From Bugula neritina (Eukaryota; Animalia; Bryozoa), in contig OZ037769.1 of assembly GCA_964035545.1 (NCBI GenBank), forward strand, positions 1,488,001 through 1,552,000: a stretch of 64,000 nt of DNA, read 5' to 3'. A model generated the notes under the pieces. The model saw nothing but the letters and a program-made list of their open reading frames with translations. It had not been told where the DNA came from and did no database searches. Positions 29,350 through 63,797 of this stretch are shown one piece after another (position 1 is the first letter of the stretch; each line of letters starts with the position of its first letter). The position numbers and the translations under genes were made by a program.

Positions 29350-32300
29350 ATGCTGCTCTACTTCATCACGTTATGTCTTTCCTGTGTAGGGAGTTGTAGC
29401 ACCTCTGGTACGTATAGAGCTCATGAGTCATAATATTTATCGCAATTTCTTTTTGCTGTGAAAGAATTTTTTTTTGGTAAAACAAGGAATGAATTTTGTG
29501 CATTATTTATAAAGCTCTGAATTAGATAACCAGAACAGAGGATTTTATTTATAACCATGCACAAGATAAATTTTTATAGTCTTAATAAAAACAGTACATG
29601 AGTTTTTAAAACTCAGTTTTTTATGAATTTTCAAGCAAAATAGCTTCTTGTACTTTAAGTTGTACCTGTAGTTATATGCACGTTAGCATGATAATTTACA
29701 TATAAATACACCTAAAATCTAAAGCATCTACTGTTGGAATTCTATAAATATGCTTTAATTTGACATGAAGATCGGACACAATATTTGTTCTTAGAAACCA
29801 AACAAACCATGTTATGTTTTTAAGTCACACTGCAATTAACCAGATTCTGCTTGCTTACAGCTTGTCAATAAATATACTTTCATTGTAGGAGAACCGTTTT
29901 ATTTATATGCATAGAGATTTACAGGAAATTTTACAAAATTCAATTACATATTTATAAAATAAATTACACTTCAAAATTTGAACTAAAGTTAGGTCAAATC
30001 TCTATATTAAGCTAAATAAAGATATATTTGTTGCCTTTTCATGATGCAAGGTATGATGCAATTGTTGCGTAAGACATGGTTATCCCAATAGATAAATTAT
30101 GATGTCTGGGTAATAAGATCATGTTCAAGTGAAAGGAACCAATTCTTGTTGATGCAACACTCTACTATAAGTTGGGTTGCTTTCAGATGCACCCGCTTAC
30201 TTCATGGTGATAGGAGAGGAATATTCTGCATGTGATTCTGCACAACAGGCCTTCGTCAACAGCGTCATCAATAAGACCAATAATGAGTCTAATGAAATCA
30301 AAGTTGGTAAGCTGATAAAATATATAAATAAATTAAAATATTTTTGCTTTATGATTGAAATCAAAATTTTATTTGAACTCTAATTCACACAAGCCACTTT
30401 TTTAAGCTTTTGAAAACTGTTTTAACCAGATCTTCTAAACAAATTGCATCTTTATAAATTTACATACACTTTACAGCAAGGCTGTTTGTCAAAATCAAAC
30501 TTTCTCAGCAGTAATTGCTTCACCATCTGGTTTTACTTGTTTACACGTAATGTGTCTAAAATAAACTAAAGTTGTTTGCAAAGTAATGTACTTTCAATTG
30601 TACAGTTGAAATTAATACAATTTTTGTAACCAAACAAATTTCTAAAGAAGTTTTATTTTTTTATTTTTGATGGCTTATAAAACTTTCTTTGAAGGTGGAA
30701 TGTAACATTGTATTACAATTAGATACTTAGGAGTAATATGTTTTCATGAACAATATCTGTTGCTCTTACGAGCAATATATGGAGCTCATTTACCACTTAA
30801 TTATTGTACCAGTCACTATGTTGAGCTCATATAACTATATTCATTAATTTACATGAATAATGGAAAAATATATTTGGCTTGAAAATTACTGATGAATAAA
30901 ATTTTATTGTCTTCAACTCAAGGCCATGTTTTCTGGTCTTATCATAATATCTCACTCTTAGTATATGTCAACATCATACTACTACCTGCAGGAGTAGAGT
31001 ACATACCTGACTATGATGACAATAGTATTACCAGGTTACACGTGGCAGCAGAGATTTCAAGGTATTCCAACTCCCAGGTGTGTCCTGGAGACAGCATCAG
31101 TCAGTCAGCAAACTTCAACAGCACTTTAATAGGTATTGTTTGTTTGTATTCTAATGCTTTATTATTATATATATGCTATTTATCGTATATAGTGTTATGT
31201 TAAGCTTTTACGGCACTCTAACATGTATCTTCGTATATATTTTATTCTTTTTTTACTATATATGTTATGATTACGATATTGTAATAAACTTTAACCCCTC
31301 ATTCACACTTACCGTACCGTAGGCTGTATCAGCAAATATCAGCCATTTTTATAAGTGTCTGAGCTTCCTGTACGGCATTGCGATACGTTAGGATCAAGTA
31401 CTGCTTGATTCAAAAATGTTGCAGCGAACTCCTATTAGACCAAAAACTTTTGCGTTAACTCATTTGATATAACTGTTTAATGAAGTGTCATAGATCGTAC
31501 CTAATGGCGGACTTTGAGAACTTCAGCGTAGACACATTAAAAATGGCTGATATTTTACGCTACTTCCTACGATGCGTAAAGCGTGAATGAAGGTTGATGG
31601 AGCTTTAATCAGTGTTGTGTGTATATCGTATCTATTTCAACAGTCAATAATATTATGATAAAATAATAATTACATTTATTTATATAACTGTTAAAGTTTG
31701 AAACCTAAACAAAATAAAAAATTTCATCTGAAAAAATCTAAAATGTTCGGCTCTACGTTACAGTTAGGTTAGGTTACAGAACTTGTATTATTAGTTGGAT
31801 AAATGCATAATATACTGAAGATTGAATTATATAATACCTAGAACAGCTTTGAAGTAGTTACTTAAGGAAATATAACAGGATTAATGTAATAGATATACAC
31901 ACTCTTACATTTAGAATATCAAACATTTACTTTTATTCCTTATATTATTTGCATATACTTACTCCCTACGGTATATTACATAAGTATTTCCTTCTATGGT
32001 AAGTGCATGCCTCTTTGAATATAGAGTATGTTTGTTTTAAGCATTATTACAGGGAAAGAGGGAAAAAATTATTTTTTGTGAAGGTCAAAAATATCTACAG
32101 TAACTTTGAGTTTGCATATTTATCTTCATTGAAATTTTTTGGATAGAAAACTTACTGTAAAAAGCTGGAAATATGATGAGGTTTGAGTTGAAACTAAGTT
32201 GAAATCTTGAATTACTAAATGTTGCTCAGATATACAAAAAGCACTTCACAACTAAATTGGAAGTAAAACTGCACTGCCACATGCTATTGTCATGTTTACT

Positions 32301-60886: not shown

Positions 60887-63797
60887 TTGTATCTCAGGCT
60901 GTTAGAAACTTACTACACAGACTAAGGGCAAGAAAGATGGAGTGGTGGAAAGAGAGTGGTAGTATATTCATAATGACAGAAGTATGGGAGGACAGACCTG
61001 AACTATTGGATGAGTATGGAGATCTGCTCAGAGGGTCCTTGACCTTTAAAATAACTCCTGAATTCAGTGTAAGAGCGAGTAGAACTATTACAATGCACAT
61101 TCATTTTCTTTATGGTATCGAATCAAAATTTAAAAAAATATTGGTAGAGTTTTAAAGTTAATATATTGACAGTTGATTTAAAACAACTTGACTTAAAATT
61201 TATTGTAATTAATTTTAATCATAAATTCTGTGTTAGAAATACAAAATATTAGTCACAGAAATTGAAACATTTTTAATAGGACATTTAAAACTGCAGGTTC
61301 CAAAAAAAATGAAAACAATCTGGATAATGGCCCTCATGATCCCAATAACTTTGATGTTCAAGTCAACAACATAAACATTGTCGATAGAGATCATATGACG
61401 ACCGGTAAGTGTCAGGATGCGCACCAGCTTTTTACAGTCTGTGCGTATCTCTAAAGCGATATGCATCCACCCTTGGTGGCTACTAAATACGAAAAATTCT
61501 TTCAGTTCAAGCAGTTGAAAAAGTTGCTAAATTTAATTAACACTGTGTCAGCAATACCTTTCGCTGGGAGAACAACAAATCTTCTGAAATATTGTACCAG
61601 CAGACCATTGACTTTGAGAATTTTTTTGTTGTTTTGTACTTTATAAATAAATTTGCTTTTGGTTCACAGAGGAGAATGCACATCCTGCAAATCAAATCCA
61701 AGGTGCTACTGGAACTTCTTTTATCAACAGTGGGACAAATTCACCGAGGCAACATTATGATGCCGACATATTTTCAGCTGCAGTGTTAGTTTGCACTATT
61801 TATTTGACTGAAATATAATCATGAGTTATTCTAAAGTTGAGTTTTATGAAACCTTGATGAGGTTACTCTGTCACTCGTTTATAGCTGGGGCCACCTGGTT
61901 GGATGTCCCTTCATCATTGCACGGGCCGAATAGTAACCCTCCCATAGAAGGTAACAGTGAAGGGGTCCAAGAAGAAGGAAGAGAAACTGCAAGCCGAAGA
62001 AGATCAGCTGATCTTGTGATAAAAGACTTAAATACCCATCCCAGACCGCCACCACAGGGCATGACATCATCGAAGTCAGCTGGCAGCCTCATACCCACCA
62101 AACAGAGCAACATTACAGAAGTCATTCTGGAGGAAAGTTCACAAACTGAGGAAGAATCATAAAAACTAAAAATACTAAACTACTAAGGCATGGCGGTTAG
62201 ATTTGCATCCGTGCATGATGTAGAAAGAGATATTTTATATGAGTGAACGGGTTAGCATTATATACATTCCGTCTCACGATACAGGCATAGGTTAACTCAA
62301 ACCAGTAAGCAAAGTCCTAAAAAATTAAATAGCCTGGCTACTTTATACGCATTGAAGTATACTTATGTATGCGGTCGAAACTTTTAGCCACTACATATGG
62401 TGCGAGATTTTAGCATCTACATGTACCACATTGAACAGGGCATGAACAGTGAACAGAGAGAGCTTGCTGATTCCTAACTCTAAGTAGGAGAGCTGAGTGG
62501 CTTTAAGTCACTTGCTTGACTTAGTTGACTTGAACTGACTTGACTTGGTTGACTTGAACTGACACCACTTGGTTAGAGATAGCTGGCAACATTTGAAAGT
62601 CATACAAGTAAAAGTATTTCACTGTTTACAAGTTTAGTTCCTTATTTCAGCACTTAGATAAATTTGTTACACTGTGATCATCTTGTAGAAATTCAAGCTT
62701 TCAACTATAATTTATATACAGTTAGTGGAAAGTATCATAGCCATTGTGTTTAACCACCAGCGAGGCATTTATTTAATCTTAAAGAATATATACTCATTCA
62801 ATAAAGATAAATGTATTAGTTTCAATCTATTTAAACTTAAACTTGAAGCTAAAATTTTTTAAGCTGCTGAATGCCAGTAATTACATGCACGCCAATTGAC
62901 ATTTTTTGTGGAAAATTTATAGGTCCACATTTAAGGCTGAAATTAAATATGGTTACGTGGTAAATTTCAATGGGATCGCATCAGATTACAGTTTCTTGAG
63001 ATTTGAATTATTCAAGTTTTATTAGAATTTAAGATGGTGGTGAAATTAATTCCTCAATCATGAAAATAATTATTTATATATAAGCTGAGGCGGTAATATC
63101 ATAGCTTGAATTCCATATATATACAAACAGTTCAATGTAATCTTTTTAGTTAATGAAGCAAGTTTTAAATCTGCTTGATGATTTTTAGTTTACCGCTAAC
63201 TTGCCCGTAGCAAAACAGCATAACTACAAAGAAGTGGATGTTTTATTGGCGGGATGTTATTTTGCAACGTCATGGTAAATACCTCCAATAATGTCAATGT
63301 CTTTTACATAATACACTTATCTGGTGTGTAAATGCAAACTTCCATAGCATTTCTACAGATTTGTTAATAATTGGGAAGATTATATCGAAATAATGTTCTA
63401 TTTAATCTTGCTATATACTGTAACTTATTATTGCACTATATTATATTATCCAACTCATTTATATAAACAATTTTACAAACTTGAAATTATTGATACTAGT
63501 TTGCAGATGTATGTTGCTATCTATTTGCATGACTTATTCCCTGTGTCCTTATTGTGTTATATAATATGTCCCTTACATATAACATAGATATTCTATTACA
63601 TGTTGTGTCTTGTGTCATTATATAGAAATTTCTATTTTTTAATATATTTGTTTGCTATACCACATAAATGTTTATTTAGTGTGTGTTACTTTGATAGGAT
63701 AACCATAGTTTTATTATTTTAAAAAGATTCATTCAGATGTTAGAACAACTTGAAGTTGTCCTCTCATGCGTAATGAGATAACGCATAGCAACAATAA

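Follow-up and report, generated by a model that had tools for sequence, protein, structure and literature searches.

The 64,000-nucleotide stretch of the Bugula neritina genome analyzed here (contig OZ037769.1, positions 1,488,001 to 1,552,000; the window) carries two tandem genes, A and B, that we conclude with high confidence encode proteins with two Venus flytrap (VFT) domains and one transmembrane (TM) helix. In both, the predicted order is a signal peptide, VFT1, a linker with three cysteines (3-Cys), VFT2, a second 3-Cys linker, the TM helix and a tail of ~200 aa; the signal peptide is putative and corresponds to an N-terminal hydrophobic stretch. To our knowledge, characterized animal VFT receptors normally have one flytrap, and their output passes through a seven-transmembrane (7TM) domain, a channel, a cyclase or a kinase. 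A and B belong to an old lophotrochozoan family that spans at least two phyla, bryozoans and bivalves, and they represent known parts in an undescribed but conserved arrangement.

Architecture of genes A and B

Self-comparison of the window revealed two colinear gene copies and a partial third, with ~12 exon pairs that are colinear paralogues. Models of gene A (29350-39573, 1162 aa) and gene B (41314-55125, 1187 aa) were built by hand from the genomic letters. Each has 16 exons separated by GT-AG introns whose phases agree between the two genes, and the sole stop is the terminal one; exons 13 and 14 of gene A, which encode short parts of the tail, are the least certain (Table 1). The 3-Cys motifs quoted in a first-pass annotation of the window are found on the + strand at 34536, 37907, 50145 and 53397, and its 16-exon models, single TM helix and tail ending in a stop are likewise confirmed. 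Its description of the tail as ~190-200 aa of low complexity is accurate as to length (201 and 205 aa) and disordered character, but conserved motifs are present. The extension of the same architecture to position 62162 does not hold, as the third copy lacks a TM exon and its frames are broken.

Full-length searches and structure predictions used the NCBI model KAF6030576.1, a close paralogue that is 86% identical to gene B over ~1030 aa, as a stand-in for A and B. An exon-by-exon Pfam scan matched ANF_receptor twice along gene A, each time below the curated cut-off. KAF6030576.1 contains two ANF stretches (E 6e-22) with no 7tm_3 and no NCD3G, and A and B have one TM helix by hydropathy, in agreement with the domain content proposed from the letters alone. 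In AlphaFold models of KAF6030576.1, VFT2 takes the form of an entire mGluR-type flytrap (Foldseek E 6e-27), superimposing on mGluR2/5/8 with Z 36 and a root-mean-square deviation (rmsd) of 2.6-2.7 over 433-440 residues; its best PDB sequence match by phmmer is mGluR5 (E 1e-14). VFT1 is shorter, ~375-385 aa compared with ~500 in relatives. In the paralogue model, its second lobe, of ~125 residues, resembles flytraps of class C and LivJ type (Z 13.7, rmsd 2.4), but lobe 1 was predicted with a pLDDT below 60. To judge from these models, the N-terminal half of A and B is VFT-derived but degenerate, with only lobe 2 confidently of VFT fold. The earlier proposal of two mGluR-like flytraps per chain is therefore sound for VFT2 and only partly so for VFT1. 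A structure search of the ESM Atlas returned ordinary mGluR/ANF clusters only. The 3-Cys module comes after almost all VFTs in the two-VFT family and in multi-VFT G-protein-coupled receptors (GPCRs) of class C, where it replaces the nine-Cys NCD3G, and a cysteine in lobe 2 is invariant. In mGluRs, the lobe-2 cysteine bonds to the cysteine-rich domain.

The absence of a 7TM or enzyme domain, as first annotated, is supported by several observations. Profile scans of the genome gave no 7tm_3 or Guanylate_cyc (PF00211) match near the window. The TM exon is separated from the first exon of the next gene by only 3.2 kb in A and 3.9 kb in B, and by inspection all coding-like open stretches in these intervals are tail exons ending in a stop; hidden 7TM, cyclase or kinase exons were rejected. 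Four long tail stretches scanned against Pfam matched no family, and KAF6030576.1 has no nine-Cys NCD3G, only the 3-Cys module. For a kinase domain following the TM helix, the locus offers no unassigned coding-like stretch; the genome-wide kinase scan is a weak test that scored only part of the candidates.

Relatives, origin and known systems

With an oyster relative as query, we recovered 26 bivalve proteins of ~950-1280 aa in which ANF is present and 7tm_3 is not, from Ostrea, Saccostrea, Magallana, Mytilus, Tegillarca, Ruditapes, Solemya, Sinanodonta and Mya. Of these proteins, nearly all comprise two full VFTs with a single TM helix; the TM is missing from three models. Oyster orthologues include XP_048763362.2 and XP_065921150.1. 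Intronless contigs of 3.8 kb hold the full open reading frame (ORF), a stop and a 3′ untranslated region, whereas the oyster gene spans 15.5 kb, showing that the two-VFT, single-TM architecture is present in spliced bivalve transcripts. About 20 further exon-level relatives occur in marine assemblies, some from samples labelled BRYA. A and B have in common with the bivalve members of this unnamed family both their descent and their layout of signal peptide, two VFTs, 3-Cys modules, one TM and tail. The architecture proposed from the window thus recurs in bivalve gene models and transcripts. Nor has it been characterized as far as we could find: the literature searched, which covers few subscription papers, contains no description of two-VFT single-pass receptors or of multi-VFT class C receptors. 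The further suggestion of a local expansion agrees with the tandem arrangement and the number of genomic copies, but the family itself is old and shared with bivalves. The database names GRM5 or mGluR6/7/8 attached to family proteins are misleading.

The other full-length matches were to class C GPCRs, which contain five VFTs in scallop, whelk and one further transcript and three in amphioxus. Like A and B, these receptors (Argopecten XP_069135753.1 and Babylonia XP_076434694.1 with five, Branchiostoma XP_035691715.1 with three) stack their VFTs, each followed by a short Cys module; they differ in having three to five VFTs and a full 7tm_3, and they have no NCD3G. In a tree built from domains, bivalve VFT1 forms a clade with the first domain of the five-VFT GPCRs (support 100/99) and Bugula VFT2 one with bivalve VFT2 (support 91/92, unstarred). 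Bugula VFT1, with a branch length of 4.6, proved unplaceable in the tree, and introns were used instead. Three introns occur at the same alignment column and in the same phase in Bugula VFT1, oyster VFT1 and domain 1 of the scallop five-VFT GPCR, and are absent from scallop domains 2-5, oyster VFT2 and the amphioxus domains examined, of which domain 1 is N-terminally truncated. This coincidence in column and phase establishes that Bugula VFT1 is homologous to oyster VFT1 and to domain 1 of the five-VFT GPCRs. Since the introns are also found in the latter, they are not unique to the two-VFT family; taken with the domain tree, they indicate an ancestor common to the five-VFT GPCRs and the two-VFT single-pass family. 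Derivation from class C GPCR ectodomains, as originally suggested, is therefore supported by fold, tree and introns, with the nearest kin being five-VFT class C GPCRs and not ordinary mGluRs. A 7TM is present in the mGluR and GPRC6A outgroups, so its loss, and not its gain, is the simplest reading of the direction of change in this unrooted tree, whose deep nodes are weak.

A and B are not class C GPCRs, receptor cyclases, Venus kinase receptors or NPR-C, and each of these assignments fails on a defining feature. Class C GPCRs (mGluR1-8, CaSR, GPRC6A, T1R) resemble them in the VFT2 fold (Z 36) and part of the ligand signature, whereas A and B have two VFTs, a 3-Cys linker in place of the nine-Cys NCD3G, one TM, no 7tm_3 and no G-protein coupling surface. 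NPR-C (NPR3) combines an ANF/VFT ectodomain with one TM and a non-catalytic tail, and it is the third-ranked ESM Atlas feature match for the oyster protein. In contrast to the two mGluR-closest VFTs and ~200-aa tail of A and B, however, NPR-C has one VFT of natriuretic-peptide type, a peptide ligand bound at the dimer interface and a very short tail. Venus kinase receptors are invertebrate single-pass VFT receptors that dimerize and respond to amino acids (PMC2680970). They have a Tyr at the position of mGluR1 K409, as does Bugula VFT2, but their single VFT is GABA-B-like and they possess a tyrosine kinase domain, which A and B lack. Membrane VFT proteins without a 7TM include SmGBP of Schistosoma, which binds glutamate (PMC3206071), and EhVFT of Entamoeba, which affects actin-based motility (PMC12965686). 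Both differ in having a single VFT and no C-terminal TM or cytoplasmic tail, with an N-terminal hydrophobic segment in SmGBP and a glycosylphosphatidylinositol anchor in EhVFT. Bordetella BvgS has two stacked VFTs with unequal roles above one TM. It is a bacterial histidine kinase with another class of periplasmic-binding fold, and the resemblance is one of analogy only.

Copies, selection and gene conversion

The window corresponds to C5:1488001-1552000 of a 216-Mb assembly. At least 11 copies reside in this genome, as the VFT2-TM exon has 11 matches across the window and four further clusters. One of them, a duplicate of gene B at C4, is ~93-100% identical per exon to the Bugula neritina KAF6030576.1 locus, which is annotated as GRM5. 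Comparison of gene B with this duplicate gave a ratio of nonsynonymous to synonymous substitution (dN/dS) of 0.29 overall, with 0.28 in VFT1, 0.22 in VFT2 and 0.52 in the tail, which shows purifying selection on the genes, including the degenerate VFT1. A and B were rejected as pseudogenes on account of these values in the flytraps and their clean 16-exon ORFs. The surrounding segment, C4:10940001-10962000, is a rearranged duplicate of the window with 80-86% identity, introns included, in which the gene A tail is followed by a full copy of gene B, next by a fragment of the upstream protein tyrosine phosphatase (PTP) gene and then by gene A VFT1 exons. A VFT-phosphatase fusion at this copy was considered and discarded, as the PTP piece is a duplicated fragment of the phosphatase gene upstream in the window.

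Between A and B, synonymous sites are near saturation (divergence 0.6-0.9 in most exons); exon 3, exon 8 and the 5′ half of exon 5 are the exceptions. Three tracts of 91-95% identity amid near-saturated exons, extending into flanking intron at exon 3, indicate patchy gene conversion between the two genes. Gene C was rejected as a third intact member and is probably a pseudogene: exons 3-7, the TM exon and the greater part of exon 8 are missing, and its frame is mismatched in at least two places (58680/58755 and 61068/61297). An assembly fault is possible given the long TA repeats nearby, arrays of which flank its exons.

Table 1. Positions of genes A, B and C and of their principal features in the window.
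Feature	Position	Strand	Evidence or description
Gene A, 16 exons	29350-29407, 30187-30306, 30992-31132, 32606-32760, 33261-33501, 33916-34268, 34473-34648, 35140-35437, 35896-36132, 36420-36578, 36749-36931, 37301-38093, 38282-38329, 38619-38672, 38806-39000, 39296-39573	+	All GT-AG, stop-free
Gene A VFT1, degenerate, ~375 aa, up to first 3-Cys linker (34536-34568)	30187-34568	+	Exon 5 ANF match E 1.5e-4; paralogue lobe-2 fold; shared introns
Gene A VFT2, complete mGluR-type flytrap, up to second 3-Cys linker (37907-37939)	34590-37954	+	Sequence and paralogue fold
Gene A single TM helix, aa 943-961	38006-38062	+	Hydropathy 2.69, only internal peak
Gene A tail motifs	YTKI 39334-39345; PQPAPR (PxxxPR) 39538-39555	+	201-aa tail
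Gene B, 16 exons	41314-41398, 43201-43329, 44291-44434, 48420-48574, 48963-49200, 49480-49853, 50082-50257, 50614-50911, 51103-51339, 52123-52290, 52436-52618, 52788-53568, 53762-53818, 54169-54237, 54486-54686, 54857-55125	+	All GT-AG, stop-free
Gene B single TM helix, aa 964-982	53490-53546	+	Hydropathy 3.1
Gene B tail motifs	YTKI 54874-54885; PVPAPR 55075-55092	+	205-aa tail
Homogenized tract 1, exon 3 and flanking intron	30969-31170	+	95% identical to gene B 44266-44472; synonymous divergence 0.10
Homogenized tract 2, 5′ half of exon 5	33253-33399	+	93% identical to 48955-49101
Homogenized tract 3, exon 8 (VFT2 lobe 1)	35123-35456	+	91% identical to 50597-50930; synonymous divergence 0.24
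Gene C, truncated paralogue	57474-62162	+	Signal-peptide exon, exon-2-like piece, 52 nt of exon 8, exons 9-11, three tail-like exons

Upstream of gene A, at ~1850-27100 on the + strand, lies an ordinary receptor-type PTP gene with an F5/8 type C domain, several FN3 domains, a PTPRU/PTPRJ-like juxtamembrane part and PTP exons. Long simple repeats in the window (TG, CTACTG-type, TA and TATTAC-type) yield spurious ORFs at 15850-16260, 41664-41915, 53860-54070, 60413-60650, 60757-60890 and 63795-63890, and the 3′ flank of gene B (55130-56210) contains what appears by eye to be a long inverted duplication (~55140-55700 versus ~55720-56160).

Other VFT genes are found elsewhere in the assembly. At C9:4791930-4826804, on the - strand, three strong ANF_receptor matches ~8 kb apart are followed by guanylyl cyclase exons; these are tandem genes or else a multi-VFT receptor cyclase. 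VFT genes that are less diverged, with open frames of 559-877 aa, are located at C1:2641600-2656700, C2:5803800-5807400 and C3:3646300-3647600; those on C1 and C2 have two ANF matches per gene, and the three probably form a second subfamily with few introns. Small contigs (e.g. C33, C37, C66, C176, C304) contain many kinase genes with in-frame TAA/TAG and almost never TGA, which suggests that ciliate DNA, with its alternative genetic code, is present in the assembly.

Ligand, output and alternative readings

At the positions R78/S165/T188/D208/Y236/D318/K409 of mGluR1, Bugula VFT2 reads R S S F Y E Y, a partial match to the glutamate signature, and VFT1 retains none of it; R78 is a further glutamate-binding position. 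The remaining residues are those described for mGluR1, with S165, T188, D208, Y236 and D318 contacting the alpha-amino acid group and K409 the glutamate side chain (PMC2680970). As VFT1 keeps no ligand residues, VFT2 is the only credible candidate for a ligand pocket in A and B, and the loss of D208 disfavors a standard amino acid as its ligand. Most bivalve VFT1 and VFT2 domains read S-T-D-Y-E with an aromatic residue replacing K409, a combination that would favor amino acids other than glutamate.

Both gene A and gene B encode a tail with YTKI and a C-terminal PxPAPR. PxxxPR is present 3′ of the TM in nine of the 11 genomic paralogues. By comparison, 14 of 1704 open stretches contain it across all DNA examined, a count that includes the paralogues; three paralogue contigs from other samples have it as well, and in the C4 copy of B it is altered to PVPTPH. 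This motif binds CIN85 SH3 domains (PMC2833206), and its conservation supports a predicted role for the tails in docking CIN85/CD2AP-type adaptors, consistent with the adaptor-recruiting function first suggested. Most bivalve tails have a YxxP in juxtamembrane position, frequently together with DSGY, and some are just 19-38 aa long.

For ligand and signalling we infer that A and B may be functional, non-catalytic type I receptors in which VFT2 binds a small non-glutamate ligand and the tail recruits adaptors, a proposal that we regard as evenly balanced between right and wrong. The protein would sit at the surface, probably as a VFT-mediated dimer, with a small carboxylate-bearing ligand other than glutamate bound by the membrane-proximal VFT2 and with the degenerate VFT1 serving as a spacer or interaction module; the bivalve orthologues would probably bind neutral or hydrophobic amino acids in both VFTs. 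Flytrap closure would be relayed through the short 3-Cys linker to the TM, and the output would be recruitment of CIN85/CD2AP-type SH3 adaptors and tyrosine-motif readers, involving endocytosis and actin remodelling, and not G-protein activation. The Bugula copies may have diversified by tandem duplication and patchy gene conversion. Several points weigh against this proposal. Structure was predicted for the paralogue KAF6030576.1 and not for A or B themselves, with low pLDDT in the linkers as well as in VFT1 lobe 1; D208 is Phe or Ala in Bugula VFT2, making alpha-amino-acid binding doubtful there; the tail motif is PxxxPR in bryozoans versus YxxP in bivalves, so that the two groups may not share one output; and the unstarred grouping of Bugula with bivalve VFT2 is on a long branch.

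A rather unlikely alternative is that A and B are accessory, decoy or clearance receptors, which bind a ligand or pair with a class C GPCR and tune or remove it by CIN85/CD2AP-mediated endocytosis with no signalling of their own. NPR-C, which clears natriuretic peptides, provides a model for such a function, and the adaptors that read PxxxPR act in receptor endocytosis. The common origin with class C GPCRs and the very short tails of some bivalve members are in keeping with this possibility, and mGluR forms without a 7TM are known, namely SmGBP and a splice form of mGluR3 (PMC3206071). However, the bryozoan tails are ~200 aa long with several Tyr motifs and a dN/dS of 0.4-0.5, a loose search of this genome revealed no evident five-VFT GPCR partner, and at least 11 divergent copies fit sensing better than modulation of a few GPCRs. 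It is also conceivable, though again we think it improbable, that the VFTs bind a protein or glycan in cell recognition or adhesion, for example in colony allorecognition or contact with settlement surfaces, with linkage to actin through CD2AP. VFTs serve as protein-binding modules in the amino-terminal domains of ionotropic glutamate receptors and in peptide binding by NPRs, and a recognition function would suit the very fast divergence of the Bugula copies (seen as long branches), their tandem arrays and mosaic gene conversion, the degenerate VFT1, the loss of D208 and the 11-14 N-glycosylation sequons. It is less easily reconciled with the full amino-acid signature that bivalve orthologues keep in both VFTs, with the retention of R78, S165, Y236 and E318 in Bugula VFT2, or with a dN/dS well below 1 in both flytraps.

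Much the least probable reading, to which we attach very little weight, is that the models are truncated and cover the 5′ portion of genes for a class C GPCR, cyclase or kinase, with the effector exons missed, or that the copies are pseudogenes. The GRM5 name given by NCBI to a paralogue, the multi-VFT 7TM receptors among the nearest full-length matches and the broken state of gene C might all be read in this way. Against it stand the short intervals that hold tail exons only, the lack of any Pfam family in the tail stretches, the lack of 7tm_3 or Guanylate_cyc matches near the window, bivalve transcripts that stop after one TM and the dN/dS of 0.2-0.3.

A broader and more tentative possibility, about which we are somewhat doubtful, is that the family constitutes a G-protein-independent, enzyme-free class of animal small-molecule receptors that arose from a multi-VFT class C GPCR by 7TM loss, with SH3/SH2 adaptors reading flytrap closure directly. 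It could then provide bryozoans and bivalves with an expanded set of chemosensory receptors for dissolved cues, those of settlement or feeding for example.

The occurrence of two flytraps without an effector domain in at least two phyla shows the class C ectodomain to be a stackable module whose output is swappable. The related three- and five-VFT class C GPCRs are equally unstudied and merit investigation of their own. Members from oyster and mussel whose amino-acid signature is intact should be easy to deorphanize, and the family as a whole supplies concrete candidates through which chemical sensing by means other than GPCRs could be tested in filter-feeding and fouling animals.

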